Source: Stylophora pistillata
Taxonomy: Eukaryota
DNA length: 64,000 nt
NCBI RefSeq assembly: GCF_002571385.2
Contig: NW_019218185.1
Coordinates: forward strand, 1-64,000
Direction of reading: 5' to 3'
Part shown: piece after piece, positions 18,197 through 29,749 of the stretch
Layout: each line of letters starts with the position of its first letter
How positions within the stretch are numbered: position 1 is the first letter of the stretch
Notes under the pieces: model-generated
What the model was told of the DNA's origin: nothing
Database searches by the model: none
Seen by the model: the letters and a program-made list of their open reading frames with translations, nothing else
Position numbers and translations under genes: made by a program

Positions 18197-21100
18197 ATGG
18201 AGATTGAGTTGACATGTCCTGTTTGCTTGGATCTTTTTCAAAGGCCGATCGTTCTTCCATGTTCGCATAACCTCTGTACACCATGCGCGCGGAAAATCTT
18301 GGAGCCAAACGGAGCGCCAAAGGCATGGGCGAAATGGGTGAAGGAAAACAGGAGCGCGGACTATAAGTCGCACTTGGAACCCGATGTAAAATGTCCAACA
18401 TGTCGACGCAAAATACCTTTCGATCCAAAAGGTGTTGATGGTCTACCTCGAAATTTGATTTTGGAGAACGTAATTGAAAGATTCAAGGAAGAGAGAAAAA
18501 CTCCAGGTAGATACCGAGAGGGAATTTTCTTTTTCTCCTTATTGAAACATTTCATCAGCTATCACATAGAAATATAAGTGGTTTTAAGGTTTGAGTTAAT
18601 TTTTTTTCTTAGGAAGAACGTAATTGTCTTCGATTTTGCGTTCATCACATTGCGGATCACAATCCATTACAATGCAACTGCAATCGTCTTGGTGACCACA
18701 TTAAAAAGTGTTCTTTATCGGTTCAATATCTATTAGTTTAATGCCTATGAAGAAAGTCTGCAGTACTCATTTATTTCAGCCTTGACCATACATTTGCTTT
18801 TTTTGAAATTATCTACAGTCACGGAATTTGAATTAAACATAGTCGTAATAGACTCTTGAGAGTTCTTTTCCGTTTTAATTATTTATGTGGGCAGCCGAAC
18901 TATGTTTATTTCGTTGAAACGTAAAAATTAATGAGCGTCGTATGAAATTTTAAATTAAAACAATTTTTTAATTTCTTTGTTTCAAGTAAGCCAAATTTAA
19001 TTTTATGCGGAAATTATTCGTTTGAATTCGTTTTCGTTCTTTATAATAATTGATGTAACTGTTGAATATTTCAGTAATTATGAGTGAACGTGTTTTAATT
19101 GGTACTCGTTTGTTCGGTCGATTGTTAGACTCTTGACAAAAAAAATGTGAAGCAGTTTTTAAAGAAATGACAAGAGACTTCTCTGTTATATTAAAAGTTT
19201 ATTACGACGTCGTGAAAGTTCAGAGCTGTTGCACTAGCCGTGTGGAGAAATGAGCCGAAAAGCCAAACCAAAATAATCGTCGTGTCCAATCATATCGTCT
19301 GTAAATAGACGTTGGAACAAGCAACTATATTCGGCGCGGGGAAACTTTCATTACTATATATAATGCGACGTGGTGTTTTTGCGTCTGATTGTTAAATAAG
19401 ATTGGCGCAATTCTTTGACATAACGCAACCAGCTCCAAGCGCGGGAAAATGTGCATAAATGATTTTCGGTTTGTTTTTTTTTCCGTTTTGTTACAAAGAC
19501 AAAAACAAAAAAAACCAGTTCGAGGCGTCTTTGTTCCGGTCGAAAGGCATGCCAGCTGAAAACCTAACGCAGATCTAGGCTGAGTGTGACTTGTTTTTTT
19601 CTATAGCCAGACAAAAACCGCCAAATAAAAACCGCCGTGTTACGCCACTATGTTTCATCTTCTTCGGGCGTTCGACCATGCTGTTTAATTTTATTTCATG
19701 TTCGTTTTAGGTCAAGCACAGGAGGAACCTCTTCTGTGTCAATTCTGCGAAGATTACTCCCCTCAAAAAGCTACTTTGATGTGCAACGAGTGTGCCTTTC
19801 TCTACTGTGGAACCTGTTTCGATGCGTGCCATCCCAGCAAGGGCCCTTTAGCCGACCATACCATAGGGCCTGCTATAGCCAAGCCCACAAAGCGTCAAGA
19901 AAAGAGCATGCAATGTCAGCAACACAAAGAAGAGAAACTGGCTCTGTACTGCTTTGCATGCAAAGAGCCGGTGTGCTATTTGTGCAAAGAGTAAGGCACC
20001 CATAAGGGGCACAATGTGGAACTGCTAGAGCCCGTATTTAGAAATGCAAAAGTAAGAATAGCACATTTCCTCCGTAGATTACTTGTTAGTTAATTATGAT
20101 ATTGTCGTACACAAAATTTTTCTCTGAACAATTTTTCAACTTGTAGGAGGAGTTGGCGAGAACATTAGGAACGCTGACAAGGAAGAATTACCATGTACAA
20201 AAGTCTCTTCAGTCCTTAGAGGGGATGTGCACTATTGCCAAGGTAAGTTTTTGTTTGATACGAAGAAAGGGCTGCATGCCCATGCAGCTCCCAATTCATC
20301 ACGGTCCCCAGTTTTCCCGCGGTGCCTGAAGAGCTACGGAATCTATCCAAAGAGTTTCCACTTAAACAAGTCAACAAATGATACTAGCGAATAAAGTCTT
20401 TTACAACTTCCAGGGAAGCGATGGAAAGCTAAGAGGTGGTCGGCTGTACCTGTAAAGCTGCCAACTTTGGGAAAAAGATATTCGATAATAAAGTCCTAAA
20501 TAACCGTCGAGTAACAATGAAACAAAAATGATAATAATATAAAAGCTTGAAAATAAATTTATGTTACTTTATTAAATTTTAGAAGTCTGGTTGTGACGTT
20601 GAAGCTCATGTCAAGAGGGAATGCGACTCACTGATTGCTATAGTGGAAAAAAAGAAAGCGGAGCTATTTAAAAGAGTAGGTGATGAATATCAAGATAAAC
20701 TAGGAGAACTTAGCGATGCCATGCACCAGTGTGAAAATATACTGTTACAAGGTGACGGCTTGGCTGAGTTCACACAAGAAGCTTTGAAGGAGGATAACCC
20801 CGCAACTTTCCTTCAGGTAAGTGCGACTGTCTATTCTACTACTGTGAACTGCAACTGTTACCAGGCAACAAGTTAGTCTGGTTTACACTAGGAACTTTAG
20901 AAAAATATAGCAGTCACATTATTTCAGGTGAATATTGACTTATCCTCCATGATAAATAAGAATGAAAACTGCGCTTTAAAAACAGTAGCAAGTTTACTTT
21001 GCCTACTCGTTTATCATCAATTAATTTGATCTTTTTTGCAGACAGCCGACGCCTTAAAGACAAGGTAACTAAATTAGCATACTTTCCGTTCAAAGTTGAG

Positions 21101-27100: not shown

Positions 27101-29749
27101 AATCAGTCTGTCAGTCAGTCTGTCAGTCAGTCAGTCAGTCAGTCAGTCTGTCAGTCAATTAGTCAGTCTGTCAGTCAGTCAGTCAGTCTGTCAGTCAGTC
27201 AGTCACTTAGTCAGTCTGCCAGTGAGTCAGACTGTCAGTCAATCAGTCAGTCTGTTAGTCAGTCTGTCAGTCAGTCAGTCTGTCAGTCTGTCAGTCAGTC
27301 AGTCTGTCAGTCAGTTAATTAGTCAGTCAGTCAGAAACTTCGTCACTTGGTTGGTCAGTCTGTCAGTCAGTCCGGCAGTCGATCGATAGGTCAGTCAGTC
27401 ATTTAATTAGTCAATCAGCCGGTCATCAGTCAGTCAGTCAGTGAGTGAGTGAGTCAGTCGATTAGCCAAACAGTTAGCCAGTTAGTCAGTCATTTGGTCA
27501 GTCAGACATTGAGTCGATCAGTCTGTTGGCGGACAGCTAAACAGACAAACAGGTACACAGAAAGTCAAAGTAACAAGCGATATAGATACCAGGGCTACAG
27601 ATCCATATCCAAGAATCATTGAAAAGCCTGAGAGTTGCAAATAAATCATCCTACACGAAAAGTCCTCGTGGCTGATCCACGGACTTCTTTTCCGCGGGAC
27701 GAAAATGGAGGATTTGAAAGAGGCTGAACTTGTGCGACATCTCCTTTGACAACCACTATCTTTATGAATCTTAATTCGAAATATATTCCTTCTAGGCTTA
27801 TACTTCCAACTGGATTCATCATCAGCGAATCACGACTTGGAACTAACCAATGAAAATTGTACTGTGAGTCTGAAAAGTCCTATGTACACTTTCATTTTGG
27901 GAAACGTGAAATTATCTACTGCTTGTCATTACTGGAGAGTTCACGTGGATGAATTCAACTCCCACAACAAACTCTCAATCATCGGTAAGTGAAGTTTCTA
28001 AAAAGAATCTTCCATTGGTGTGTCACGAGATCTTGTTGGGAGGACTGCGTGACGGAAATGCGGAGGTTCTTACTTCCGTTCTCTAGTTACCACATAAGAG
28101 GATTCTTAAGTTCTAATAAGTCTTCAGGCCAGAGGACTTTCGTGTCTGTTTTGGACTTCATATAATTGGAACGAGATGGTCTACCATCGCTTTACACCGG
28201 CTGGGAAGAAGCTTCGAAAACGTTTCGGTACTGTCTTGCCATGTCTAGAGTACATGAATGACAACGCTACAAGTACACAGGGATTGAACGGGGAGGGGGA
28301 GGGGGGAGGAATGCACTAGCAACTTGACCATACGGCTTTTTTTACAGATTATTATAGGGAACTTGAGCAGAGAAGATTTTGAGACGGGGATAGAAGCAAG
28401 AATTAAAAATCTTTTTACCTTGTGTTATATTACAGATCTTTAGTCTATACCGTTTAGATTATAAAACTAAAGCAAGGGTTTTTGCAGTATTTTGGTTGAA
28501 GTCAAGGTGCTCTAGAAGAAGCTGAATTCTCTTTCTTATTTATCTTCGCTTTTTAAAAACGTCCGTTCAGTTAGATCCAACAACACAGCACAGGGATCCC
28601 GGTTGTTCCTTTAGAAGTCTGCCTCAGATCTTATTGGTCTCAGTCCGTCATTTCATACTTATATTAACCTTTGACGTTATCAATCATATTTTCTCAAACA
28701 ATGTATTTTCCAACTAACAGGTGTCGGTGTCGCCCGAAAGGCTCTTGAGGACCCAATCTTAGGCGAAGATTCTGATTCTTATGCCGTACAAATCAACGAA
28801 CATCCGAACGTTTCGTGTTCAAACACGAAGAACCGAGTGCAGATCAAGAGGTCGTCAAAGGAACTTACTAACACAAATATCGGCGTACTGTTGAACTTAG
28901 ATGAATACTTTTTGAATTTGTATCTAAACGGTAAGAAACAATGCCAAGGGAGGGTAAGGGAAAACTGTTTCTGAACAAGTGCTCACCCACCCCTCCCCTA
29001 AACTAAAATTGACCCTGATTATTATTTGTTATCAGTTGGCTGTTGTTAAGGGAGAGGTAGATGCACAAATTATCCCGGAAGAATTCTCAAGTAAGGGCAG
29101 AGTACGAGGGTAGTTTGCTATGTGCAAATCAGACTTCCGAGAAAAGAATTTGGAGAAAGAGAACTGAATCTGGCTTTTGGCGGCCAGGTATCATTCATGT
29201 GCACAGTGAAGACCCAGAAACGTCTCTTTGACTTTGATAAATGCACCTTTCCTGGAAGTGCAGGACCGTAGTTGCCTTAAGTCATGTAAAAATCAGGGCA
29301 CTCTCCTGCAATAGTATTGTGCTCTTTTTCCTGAGGCGTGAAGTTCTGTATTTGCCCGTGGGTGTCCCACACCACTGTCTTATACAAAGACCTTTTCTAC
29401 CAGGAATTTTTACTTTTTCATACCCATGGGAGATTTCTTCTTAAGCAGCTTTAACTTTCTTACACGTCAACACAATATTATATTTACTTTTTACACCTGT
29501 ACAAGTCATTTCAACACATTCCCATTTGGCTACTTTACATAAAATACCACAATAAAATAGTCACTCAAATTAATAATCCAAATAAATCCCGTCAATTCCT
29601 CTTTATTCTTAGGCAAACTCCTGACGGATCCATCCAGACCGAATGGGCCGACATTTGTAGGTTTATTGGGGGAGTTTTATCCTGCGCTGAGTCTTTACGG
29701 AACAAATGTTAAATTGACCGTTTACACTGGAGAGTCGTACGATGAGTGA
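18197..29749 (+). CDS. TRIM9-related protein, RBCC followed by three tandem FN3-SPRY modules, about 1216 aa; in-frame TAA at 19992-19994 in this assembly
   Basis: Exons: 18197-18506, 19711-20051, 20147-20242, 20583-20816, 21042-21064, 21598-21731 (GC donor), 22438-22734 (FN3-1), 23120-23353 and 24017-24328 (SPRY-1), 24622-24915 (FN3-2), 25360-25548 and 25901-26245 (SPRY-2), 26624-26929 (FN3-3), 27796-27984, 28721-28930 and 29613-29749 (SPRY-3). The join is 3651 nt with consistent phases and three CHYW motifs. Confidence 0.88.
21150..21410 (-). mobile_element. SINE copy (family also at 59925-60148 and 60850-61140)
   Basis: Shared core cccctggatgggatgctag.ccat...ccatttata..c.tgggtggag.gag...acaacaca. 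Confidence 0.7.
26970..27530. repeat. Imperfect (CAGT)n/(CTGT)n microsatellite, intronic
   Basis: About 550 bp of cagt/ctgt tetramers that degenerate rightwards. Confidence 0.97.

Follow-up and report, generated by a model that had tools for sequence, protein, structure and literature searches.

In the first 64,000 nucleotides of contig NW_019218185.1 of the coral Stylophora pistillata (398 Mb genome in 5513 contigs), the stretch analysed here and called the window below, we find a TRIM gene whose C-terminal recognition cassette, an FN3 domain followed by a SPRY domain, appears to be present three times in one chain. We consider it likely that this is a real, expressed, single-copy coral gene of the class-I TRIM type encoding ~1216 amino acids with a triplicated FN3-SPRY cassette, that it is a diverged paralogue of TRIM9/67, and that its product would work as a multivalent, multi-specific adaptor or scaffold E3. 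The usual description of a TRIM ligase is a single tripartite motif with a single recognition unit at the C-terminus. The interest of the present gene lies in the triplication of the whole cassette within one class-I TRIM, with all three copies under strong constraint across divergent corals. A sequence-only reading of the locus had proposed a single gene encoding a tripartite motif and then three diverged FN3-SPRY units, and this is borne out by the gene model, the domain content and an RNA joint connecting modules 1 and 2.

The triple-module gene occupies 18197-29749 of the + strand in 16 exons (Table 1) totalling 3651 nt, or 1216 codons. The model joins stop-free segments at canonical splice sites between a start codon at 18197 (ATG) and a stop codon at 29747-29749 (TGA), and after correction by RNA it agrees with the sequence-only reading in its 16 exons, its start, its stop and its consistent phases. 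The introns were scored as 15 GT-AG and one GC-AG, the GC donor lying after 21731. Phases are consistent throughout the model, and all ten exons that make up the three C-terminal modules are of phase 1-1, the pattern expected if whole exon sets had been duplicated in tandem. A 15-exon version of the model, using an acceptor at 21575, was ruled out by RNA in favour of a 23-nt exon at 21042-21064 and an acceptor at 21598.

Table 1. Exons of the triple-module TRIM gene and position of the neighbouring TRIM gene in the window. X15 is a polyA RNA run; L010, L013 and L015 are scaffolds of relatives; support values are from the SPRY C-half tree.
Feature	Position	Strand	Remarks
Exon 1: start codon and RING finger	18197-18506	+	phase out 1; GT donor at 18507
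Exon 2: B-box 1 and B-box 2	19711-20051	+	in-frame TAA 19992-19994 in assembly
Exon 3: start of coiled coil	20147-20242	+	RNA joints on both sides (X15); L015 91% identical
Exon 4: coiled coil	20583-20816	+	TRIM_CC 15.6 bits; L010 91% identical
Exon 5: 23-nt mini exon	21042-21064	+	phase 0 in, 2 out; AG acceptor, GT donor; RNA joint 21064>21598
Exon 6: COS-like linker, GC donor	21598-21731	+	RNA joint 21731>22438; L010/L015 91-93% identical
Exon 7: FN3-1	22438-22734	+	Pfam fn3 24 bits (cutoff 25); L010 91% identical
Exon 8: SPRY-1 N half (CHYW, VGVA)	23120-23353	+	SPRY N-half profile match to TRIM67; RNA joint 23353>24017
Exon 9: SPRY-1 C half	24017-24328	+	SPRY C-half profile match to TRIM67; RNA joint 24328>24622
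Exon 10: FN3-2	24622-24915	+	fn3 32.5 bits; RNA joint 24915>25360; L010 97% identical
Exon 11: SPRY-2 N half	25360-25548	+	in SPRY N-half alignment A2; shares one X15 RNA contig with exons 9 and 10
Exon 12: SPRY-2 C half	25901-26245	+	Pfam SPRY 17.9 bits, partial; L010 95% identical; clade support 97/99
Exon 13: FN3-3	26624-26929	+	fn3 14 bits, weak; 24 orthologous exon ORFs, 62-99% identity
Exon 14: SPRY-3 N half	27796-27984	+	in alignment A2; L010 95%, L013 and L015 85% identical
Exon 15: SPRY-3 middle part	28721-28930	+	L010 88%, L013 87% identical; module-3 clade support 99/99
Exon 16: SPRY-3 C end, TGA stop 29747-29749	29613-29749	+	L010 98%, L013 93% identical
Head-to-head neighbour, single FN3-SPRY TRIM	10559-16783	-	separate gene; likely parent

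Pfam and PDB searches were run exon by exon, exons being joined only for the phases, the stops, the module alignment, the ratio of nonsynonymous to synonymous substitution rates (dN/dS) and the tree. The N-terminal part of the protein has the content of a tripartite motif. Exon 1 matches the RING models zf-C3HC4 (34.9 bits, cutoff 21) and zf-RING_UBOX (34.3 bits), and exon 2 matches two B-box models, ANCHR-like_BBOX at 44.2 bits and zf-B_box at 37.3 bits. The coiled coil spans exons 3-5; exon 4 alone matches TRIM_CC weakly, with E 0.015, its score being below the cutoff of 30. Between the coiled coil and FN3-1 a linker of ~50 amino acids occupies the place of a COS box.

The three modules that follow are 275-280 amino acids each and colinear, 37-41% identical to one another in pairwise comparison and 27-34% identical to the FN3-SPRY part of the neighbouring gene, a TRIM9/67 orthologue described below. 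Each SPRY is preceded by an FN3, and the three FN3 domains align colinearly among themselves and with that of the neighbour; against the Pfam fn3 model, FN3-2 scores above the cutoff, FN3-1 one bit below it, and FN3-3 lower (Table 1). Pfam recovers SPRY only in part and below threshold (exons 9 and 12), because introns divide every one of these domains and the scan was made per exon. Profiles built from the half-exons plus their orthologues (12 sequences for the C half) recovered the SPRY of TRIM67 (7qs5), the N-half profile over residues 6-61 at 2.7e-10 and the C-half profile over residues 76-173 at 4.2e-13, and also matched the solved SPRY domains of TRIM9, MID1 and MID2. With the N-half profile the values were 7.9e-07 for MID1 and 1.2e-04 for MID2, TRIM21 reaching only E ~0.06; the C-half profile also gave a weak match to the ryanodine receptor SPRY (E 0.0056). 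The SPRY-2 C-half exon had the SPRYs of TRIM67 and TRIM9 as its best PDB matches; a single SPRY half-exon reaches E 0.009. The SPRY motifs listed in the sequence-only reading are all present, with the correction that module 2 reads IQIK where (L/V)QIK had been given. By these matches the SPRYs belong with class I (TRIM9/67, MID) and not with class IV (TRIM5/21).

Some features of the introns are recorded here in their own right. The introns that split the SPRYs (23354-24016, 25549-25900 and 27985-28720) differ in position between modules, that of module 1 lying 12 residues later than that of module 2 and that of module 3 lying 2 residues earlier. Module 3 has one further intron, 28931-29612, which is absent in the species of the related sequence P0039, and the SPRY of the neighbouring gene is intronless. 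Much of intron 13, between FN3-3 and the SPRY-3 N half, consists of a (TCAG)n microsatellite of ~134 copies (26987-27523), which gives rise to long false open reading frames (ORFs) in three frames.

The gene is transcribed and spliced. RNA libraries of several studies contain 1/4 to 1/3 of the words sampled from a 10-kb stretch, roughly its exon content. Reads from four runs were mapped to 19650-25649, a stretch that includes the in-frame stop codon of exon 2 and excludes the (TCAG)n array of intron 13, and contigs of the polyA RNA run X15 gave seven joints there: 20051>20147, 20242>20583, 21064>21598, 21731>22438, 23353>24017, 24328>24622 and 24915>25360. The sequence-only reading had proposed RNA as the check on its junctions; these seven are seen, that from module 1 to module 2 among them, the series running only as far as 24915>25360. 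The 23-nt mini exon (via 21064>21598), the GC-AG intron, whose joint reads GC..AG after shifting three ambiguous letters, and the connection of SPRY-1 to FN3-2 are all confirmed by RNA in this way. The last of these means that transcripts continue past the first module, and the case that the sequence-only reading named against itself, transcripts ending after SPRY-1, was thus not encountered. One X15 contig of 909 nt covers the last part of exon 9 together with exons 10 and 11, and extends 369 nt beyond them; exon 12 measures 345 nt. Another run, X10, gave no joints and behaves as unspliced or DNA-containing material. Two intronic segments, 21050-21249 and 22250-22449, show depths hundreds to thousands of times those of their surroundings in DNA and RNA runs alike, and fit copies of a high-copy, transcribed interspersed repeat.

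Relatives of the gene were found on scaffolds of coral-containing (metagenome) assemblies, protein libraries giving exon-sized ORFs only. The SPRY-2 C-half exon had 27 matches among representative proteins, and all the related ones were exon-sized ORFs; three long matches (P0022, P0023 and P0026) were rejected as unrelated bacterial proteins. The search with the FN3-3 exon gave the 24 matches of Table 1, all of them genomic exon ORFs and none bridging exons 12-13. On the 19-kb scaffold L010, exons 4 and 6-16 follow one another in order at 87-98% amino acid identity and without stops. The 12-kb scaffold L015 carries exons 2-4 and 6-14 at 68-91% identity, and L013 carries exons 12-16 at 83-93% identity with COPS2 downstream, as in the window. 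More distant pieces are L006, L007 and L008, the first of which contains exons 12-13; its segment L006:1-267 was considered as a SPRY-2 N-half exon and rejected. On a 642-kb contig of another species the two TRIM genes again stand head-to-head, and orthologues of the SPRY-1 C half (P0007) and of FN3-3 (P0052) are present there as well.

Between the window and L010, dN/dS is 0.13, 0.07 and 0.06 for modules 1, 2 and 3 respectively, with dS of 0.35-0.43 and no stops, and 0.10 for the coiled coil and linker; the comparison with L013 gave no estimate, its synonymous sites being saturated. Almost all fragments are clearly closest to a single module. In a maximum-likelihood tree of SPRY C-halves, with X placed at the split codon, modules 2 and 3 each make up a clade of several taxa with the support values of Table 1, and the branch that sets off module 1 is less well supported (75/44). 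This module-specific orthology implies that the triplication is older than the split of the sampled corals. Each of the three modules is under strong long-term purifying selection, and the selection that had been suspected from the open repeats is thereby substantiated, both by dN/dS of 0.06-0.13 and by orthologous exons in several coral taxa. The only fragments equidistant from the modules are P0014 and P0019, two very diverged SPRY C-half exons that lie 3.2 kb apart on the same strand of one contig (ENA ERZ25878582). They are 30-34% identical to all three modules and both read past a Pro-Gly possibly marking the donor; the contig may carry a tandem FN3-SPRY gene of a much more distant organism.

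The likely source of the gene lies next to it. The neighbouring TRIM gene, head-to-head with it, encodes its RING and B-boxes together in one exon; then come a coiled coil, one FN3 and a SPRY that is not split by introns. Pfam matches B-boxes, fn3 and SPRY in this gene. Its SPRY exon matches the human TRIM9 SPRY at 2.9e-69, and the neighbour is the TRIM9/67 orthologue. It is this gene, and not the triple-module gene, that is the closest relative of human TRIM9/67 in the genome (2.9e-69 against E 0.009 for a single half-exon and 4e-13 for a profile). The two genes of the pair are 35% identical in the RING region and 35-41% over the RING and B-box region together, and the triple-module gene is the only carrier of its SPRY type in the 398-Mb genome. 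Since the neighbour is the true TRIM9 orthologue, the triple-module gene is a diverged paralogue of it, and it is best read, from these comparisons, as an old, diverged, head-to-head copy of TRIM9 with an expanded C-terminus.

The domain order of TRIM9 and TRIM67 (RING with a long insert, B-box 1, B-box 2, coiled coil, FN3 and C-terminal SPRY) is shared by the triple-module protein, and these two proteins are the best solved matches to both halves of its SPRYs; it differs from them in having three FN3-SPRY cassettes instead of one and in SPRYs that are far more diverged. From the neighbouring TRIM9/67 orthologue it differs in addition in that its SPRYs are split by introns. With MID1, MID2, TRIM36 and TRIM46 it shares the domain order and a linker where the COS box sits, but here too the cassette is triplicated, and the linker matches a COS box only at E 1.6. 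Class-I TRIMs have one FN3 and one SPRY per chain, whereas three complete units are found here. FSD1, FSD2 and CMYA5 (myospryn) are TRIM-related proteins in which FN3 and SPRY form a C-terminal unit, some of them with two FN3; to our knowledge they have one SPRY and no RING, whereas the triple-module gene has a complete tripartite motif followed by three whole FN3-SPRY units. The ryanodine receptor also has three SPRY domains per chain and was the only well-known such protein returned by the literature search, but its architecture is unrelated, that of an ion channel without FN3 pairing or a tripartite motif. In the immune TRIMs of class IV (TRIM5/21-like) the coiled coil leads straight into a PRY-SPRY with no FN3 between, and these genes show lineage-specific expansion and fast evolution. 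The triple-module gene is set apart from them by the FN3 before every SPRY, by being the only carrier of its SPRY type in the genome, by dN/dS of 0.06-0.13 and by the TRIM21 match of only E ~0.06. The triple arrangement had been called unfamiliar in the sequence-only reading, and a search of full-text literature, which did not cover InterPro, CDART or annotated cnidarian proteomes, indeed found no TRIM with more than one SPRY per chain; automatic models of the protein may already exist in databases.

Several observations weigh against our interpretation. The copy of the gene in the window itself has a premature stop in B-box 2; the RNA joints were observed within 19650-25649, and the joint from SPRY-2 to FN3-3 and all later ones lie beyond this mapped stretch; the raw-read RNA run X24 (~6% sampled) had zero reads on exons and reads only on intronic repeats. 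The SPRYs and FN3-3 are below the curated Pfam cutoffs, as scanned per exon. A COS box could not be made out: exon 6 has no Pfam model match for it, its only match is a weak one to the MID1 COS box (5im8, E 1.6), and it shows no similarity to an ORF of the neighbour picked by eye as the COS region, an approximate choice of query. The first two of these points lead to alternative accounts of the locus. One is that the gene is dying or dead, as the TAA at 19992-19994 might suggest, being codon 198 and lying directly before the last two zinc-binding histidines of B-box 2. It was overlooked in the sequence-only reading, which had described the repeats as all open; for the three repeats themselves this is correct. 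The last base of this codon, 19994, is C in the polyA RNA run X15 and in the DNA run X2, which comes from another study (depth 11.5 of 11.5). Both runs stem from other colonies, and both therefore read TAC, a Tyr codon, where the window has the stop. With 15 other differences from the window in 4.5 kb, X2 represents another individual or haplotype, and Tyr stands at the same site in the orthologue of the more distant coral of L015. All other exons are open and strongly constrained, and spliced transcripts are present. A donor at 19990|19991 would remove the TAA from the transcript, but it is out of frame with exon 3 and was rejected; the X15 RNA contig is continuous to 20051. From the Tyr codon in RNA, DNA and orthologue it follows that the gene is intact in the species. 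The A at 19994 of the window, a private null allele or else a base error, is not the state of the species, and we regard a dead gene as very improbable. The assembly copy looks like a nonsense allele, and in automatic annotation the gene may be cut short or left out.

The other account places module 3, or modules 2 and 3, outside the protein, on transcripts that end earlier or on a separate or alternative transcript. The mapped stretch stops short of the exon 12-13 joint, and the coverage of module 3 in X15 is uncertain, being a rough estimate from the share of words, which leaves this account some room; but RNA joins SPRY-1 to FN3-2 and FN3-2 to the SPRY-2 N half, and the features of the following exons point the same way. 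The acceptor of exon 13 is an AG and its entry phase is 1; orthologous FN3-3 ORFs that span its 5' edge run into intron-like sequence, indicating an internal exon. At the 3' edge, the SPRY-1 and SPRY-2 C-half exon ORFs have the Gly that a phase-1 G|GT donor predicts, and intron 12 contains neither AATAAA nor ATTAAA. In L006, L010, L013 and L015 FN3-3 likewise comes after SPRY-2 and shares its strand, and constraint is strongest on module 3 (dN/dS 0.06). The indirect support from sequence is thus for module 3 as part of the same protein, and we find its separation quite improbable.

If the single-protein interpretation is accepted, what the protein does can be considered by analogy. TRIM proteins engage an E2 through the RING, dimerise in antiparallel fashion through the coiled coil and bind partners through the SPRY. 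We propose that the C-terminal cassette was triplicated through duplication of phase-1 exon sets; the RING would recruit a charged E2 and the coiled coil would mediate an antiparallel dimer, as in other TRIM proteins, while three different and individually conserved SPRY surfaces might each bind a conserved endogenous partner, so that the protein would be an E3 in the role of a multivalent, multi-specific adaptor or scaffold. Three SPRYs that have diverged and yet remain individually constrained suggest three lasting, probably endogenous, binding specificities on one ligase, and the persistence of this constraint on all three copies argues for three separate binding functions. By analogy with TRIM9, TRIM67 and MID, the protein probably functions in a cytoskeletal or neuronal setting, and the role of a multivalent adaptor fits what is seen. 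The sequence-only reading had also suggested, as a possibility, an innate-immune or symbiont sensor, whose SPRY heads would recognise foreign or symbiont molecules in the manner of the PRY-SPRY domains of TRIM5, TRIM21 and pyrin. SPRYs are established recognition modules of immune TRIMs, a chain with three diverged heads would be able to bind multi-specifically or with avidity, and the gene is expressed in coral holobiont RNA libraries. The comparisons above speak against this idea: whole-module dN/dS is 0.06-0.13, and nothing points to rapid evolution; no other gene in the genome carries this SPRY type; each module has its own one-to-one orthologues; among solved SPRYs those of TRIM67, TRIM9 and MID are nearest, with TRIM21 only at E ~0.06; and the context is that of class I, with FN3 and a COS-like linker and a TRIM9 parent. 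We therefore hold a sensor to be unlikely, although the SPRYs may bind a conserved microbial ligand. For the multivalent adaptor that we prefer, a more specific form can be entertained tentatively, as a possibility that may well prove wrong: a cnidarian-specific, six-headed TRIM ligase, in which a dimer, antiparallel as in other TRIM structures and with three different, individually conserved SPRY surfaces per chain, would bring three distinct partners to one RING, and whose partners could include a conserved symbiont-derived or microbial ligand. Such a ligase, if real, could act as a coincidence detector or an assembly scaffold, with a mode of substrate recognition undescribed for any studied TRIM. 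The gene also offers a natural test case for valency and multi-specificity in TRIM/SPRY recognition and for the diversification of TRIM9-type genes in early animals.

Lastly, we note a few features of the wider locus. TRIM9-type RINGs begin with C-P-V-C. That of the neighbouring gene (16700-16783, - strand) begins with C-P-V-W, its TGG being one third-position base away from TGT or TGC; this RING may really have lost a zinc ligand, or the W may be a single-base oddity of the assembly like the TAA at 19992-19994. Downstream of the triple-module gene, ORFs at 31520-32440 (-), 36000-36944 (+), 39644-40852 (-) and 42747-44114 (+) agree in size and strand with genes called on related scaffolds, namely two 7tm_1 receptors (304 and 314 amino acids) in L010 and L017, and COPS2 and an F-box/LRR gene (455 amino acids) in L013. 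On L013, COPS2 lies only ~3 kb past the TRIM gene, no 7tm_1 gene having been called in between.

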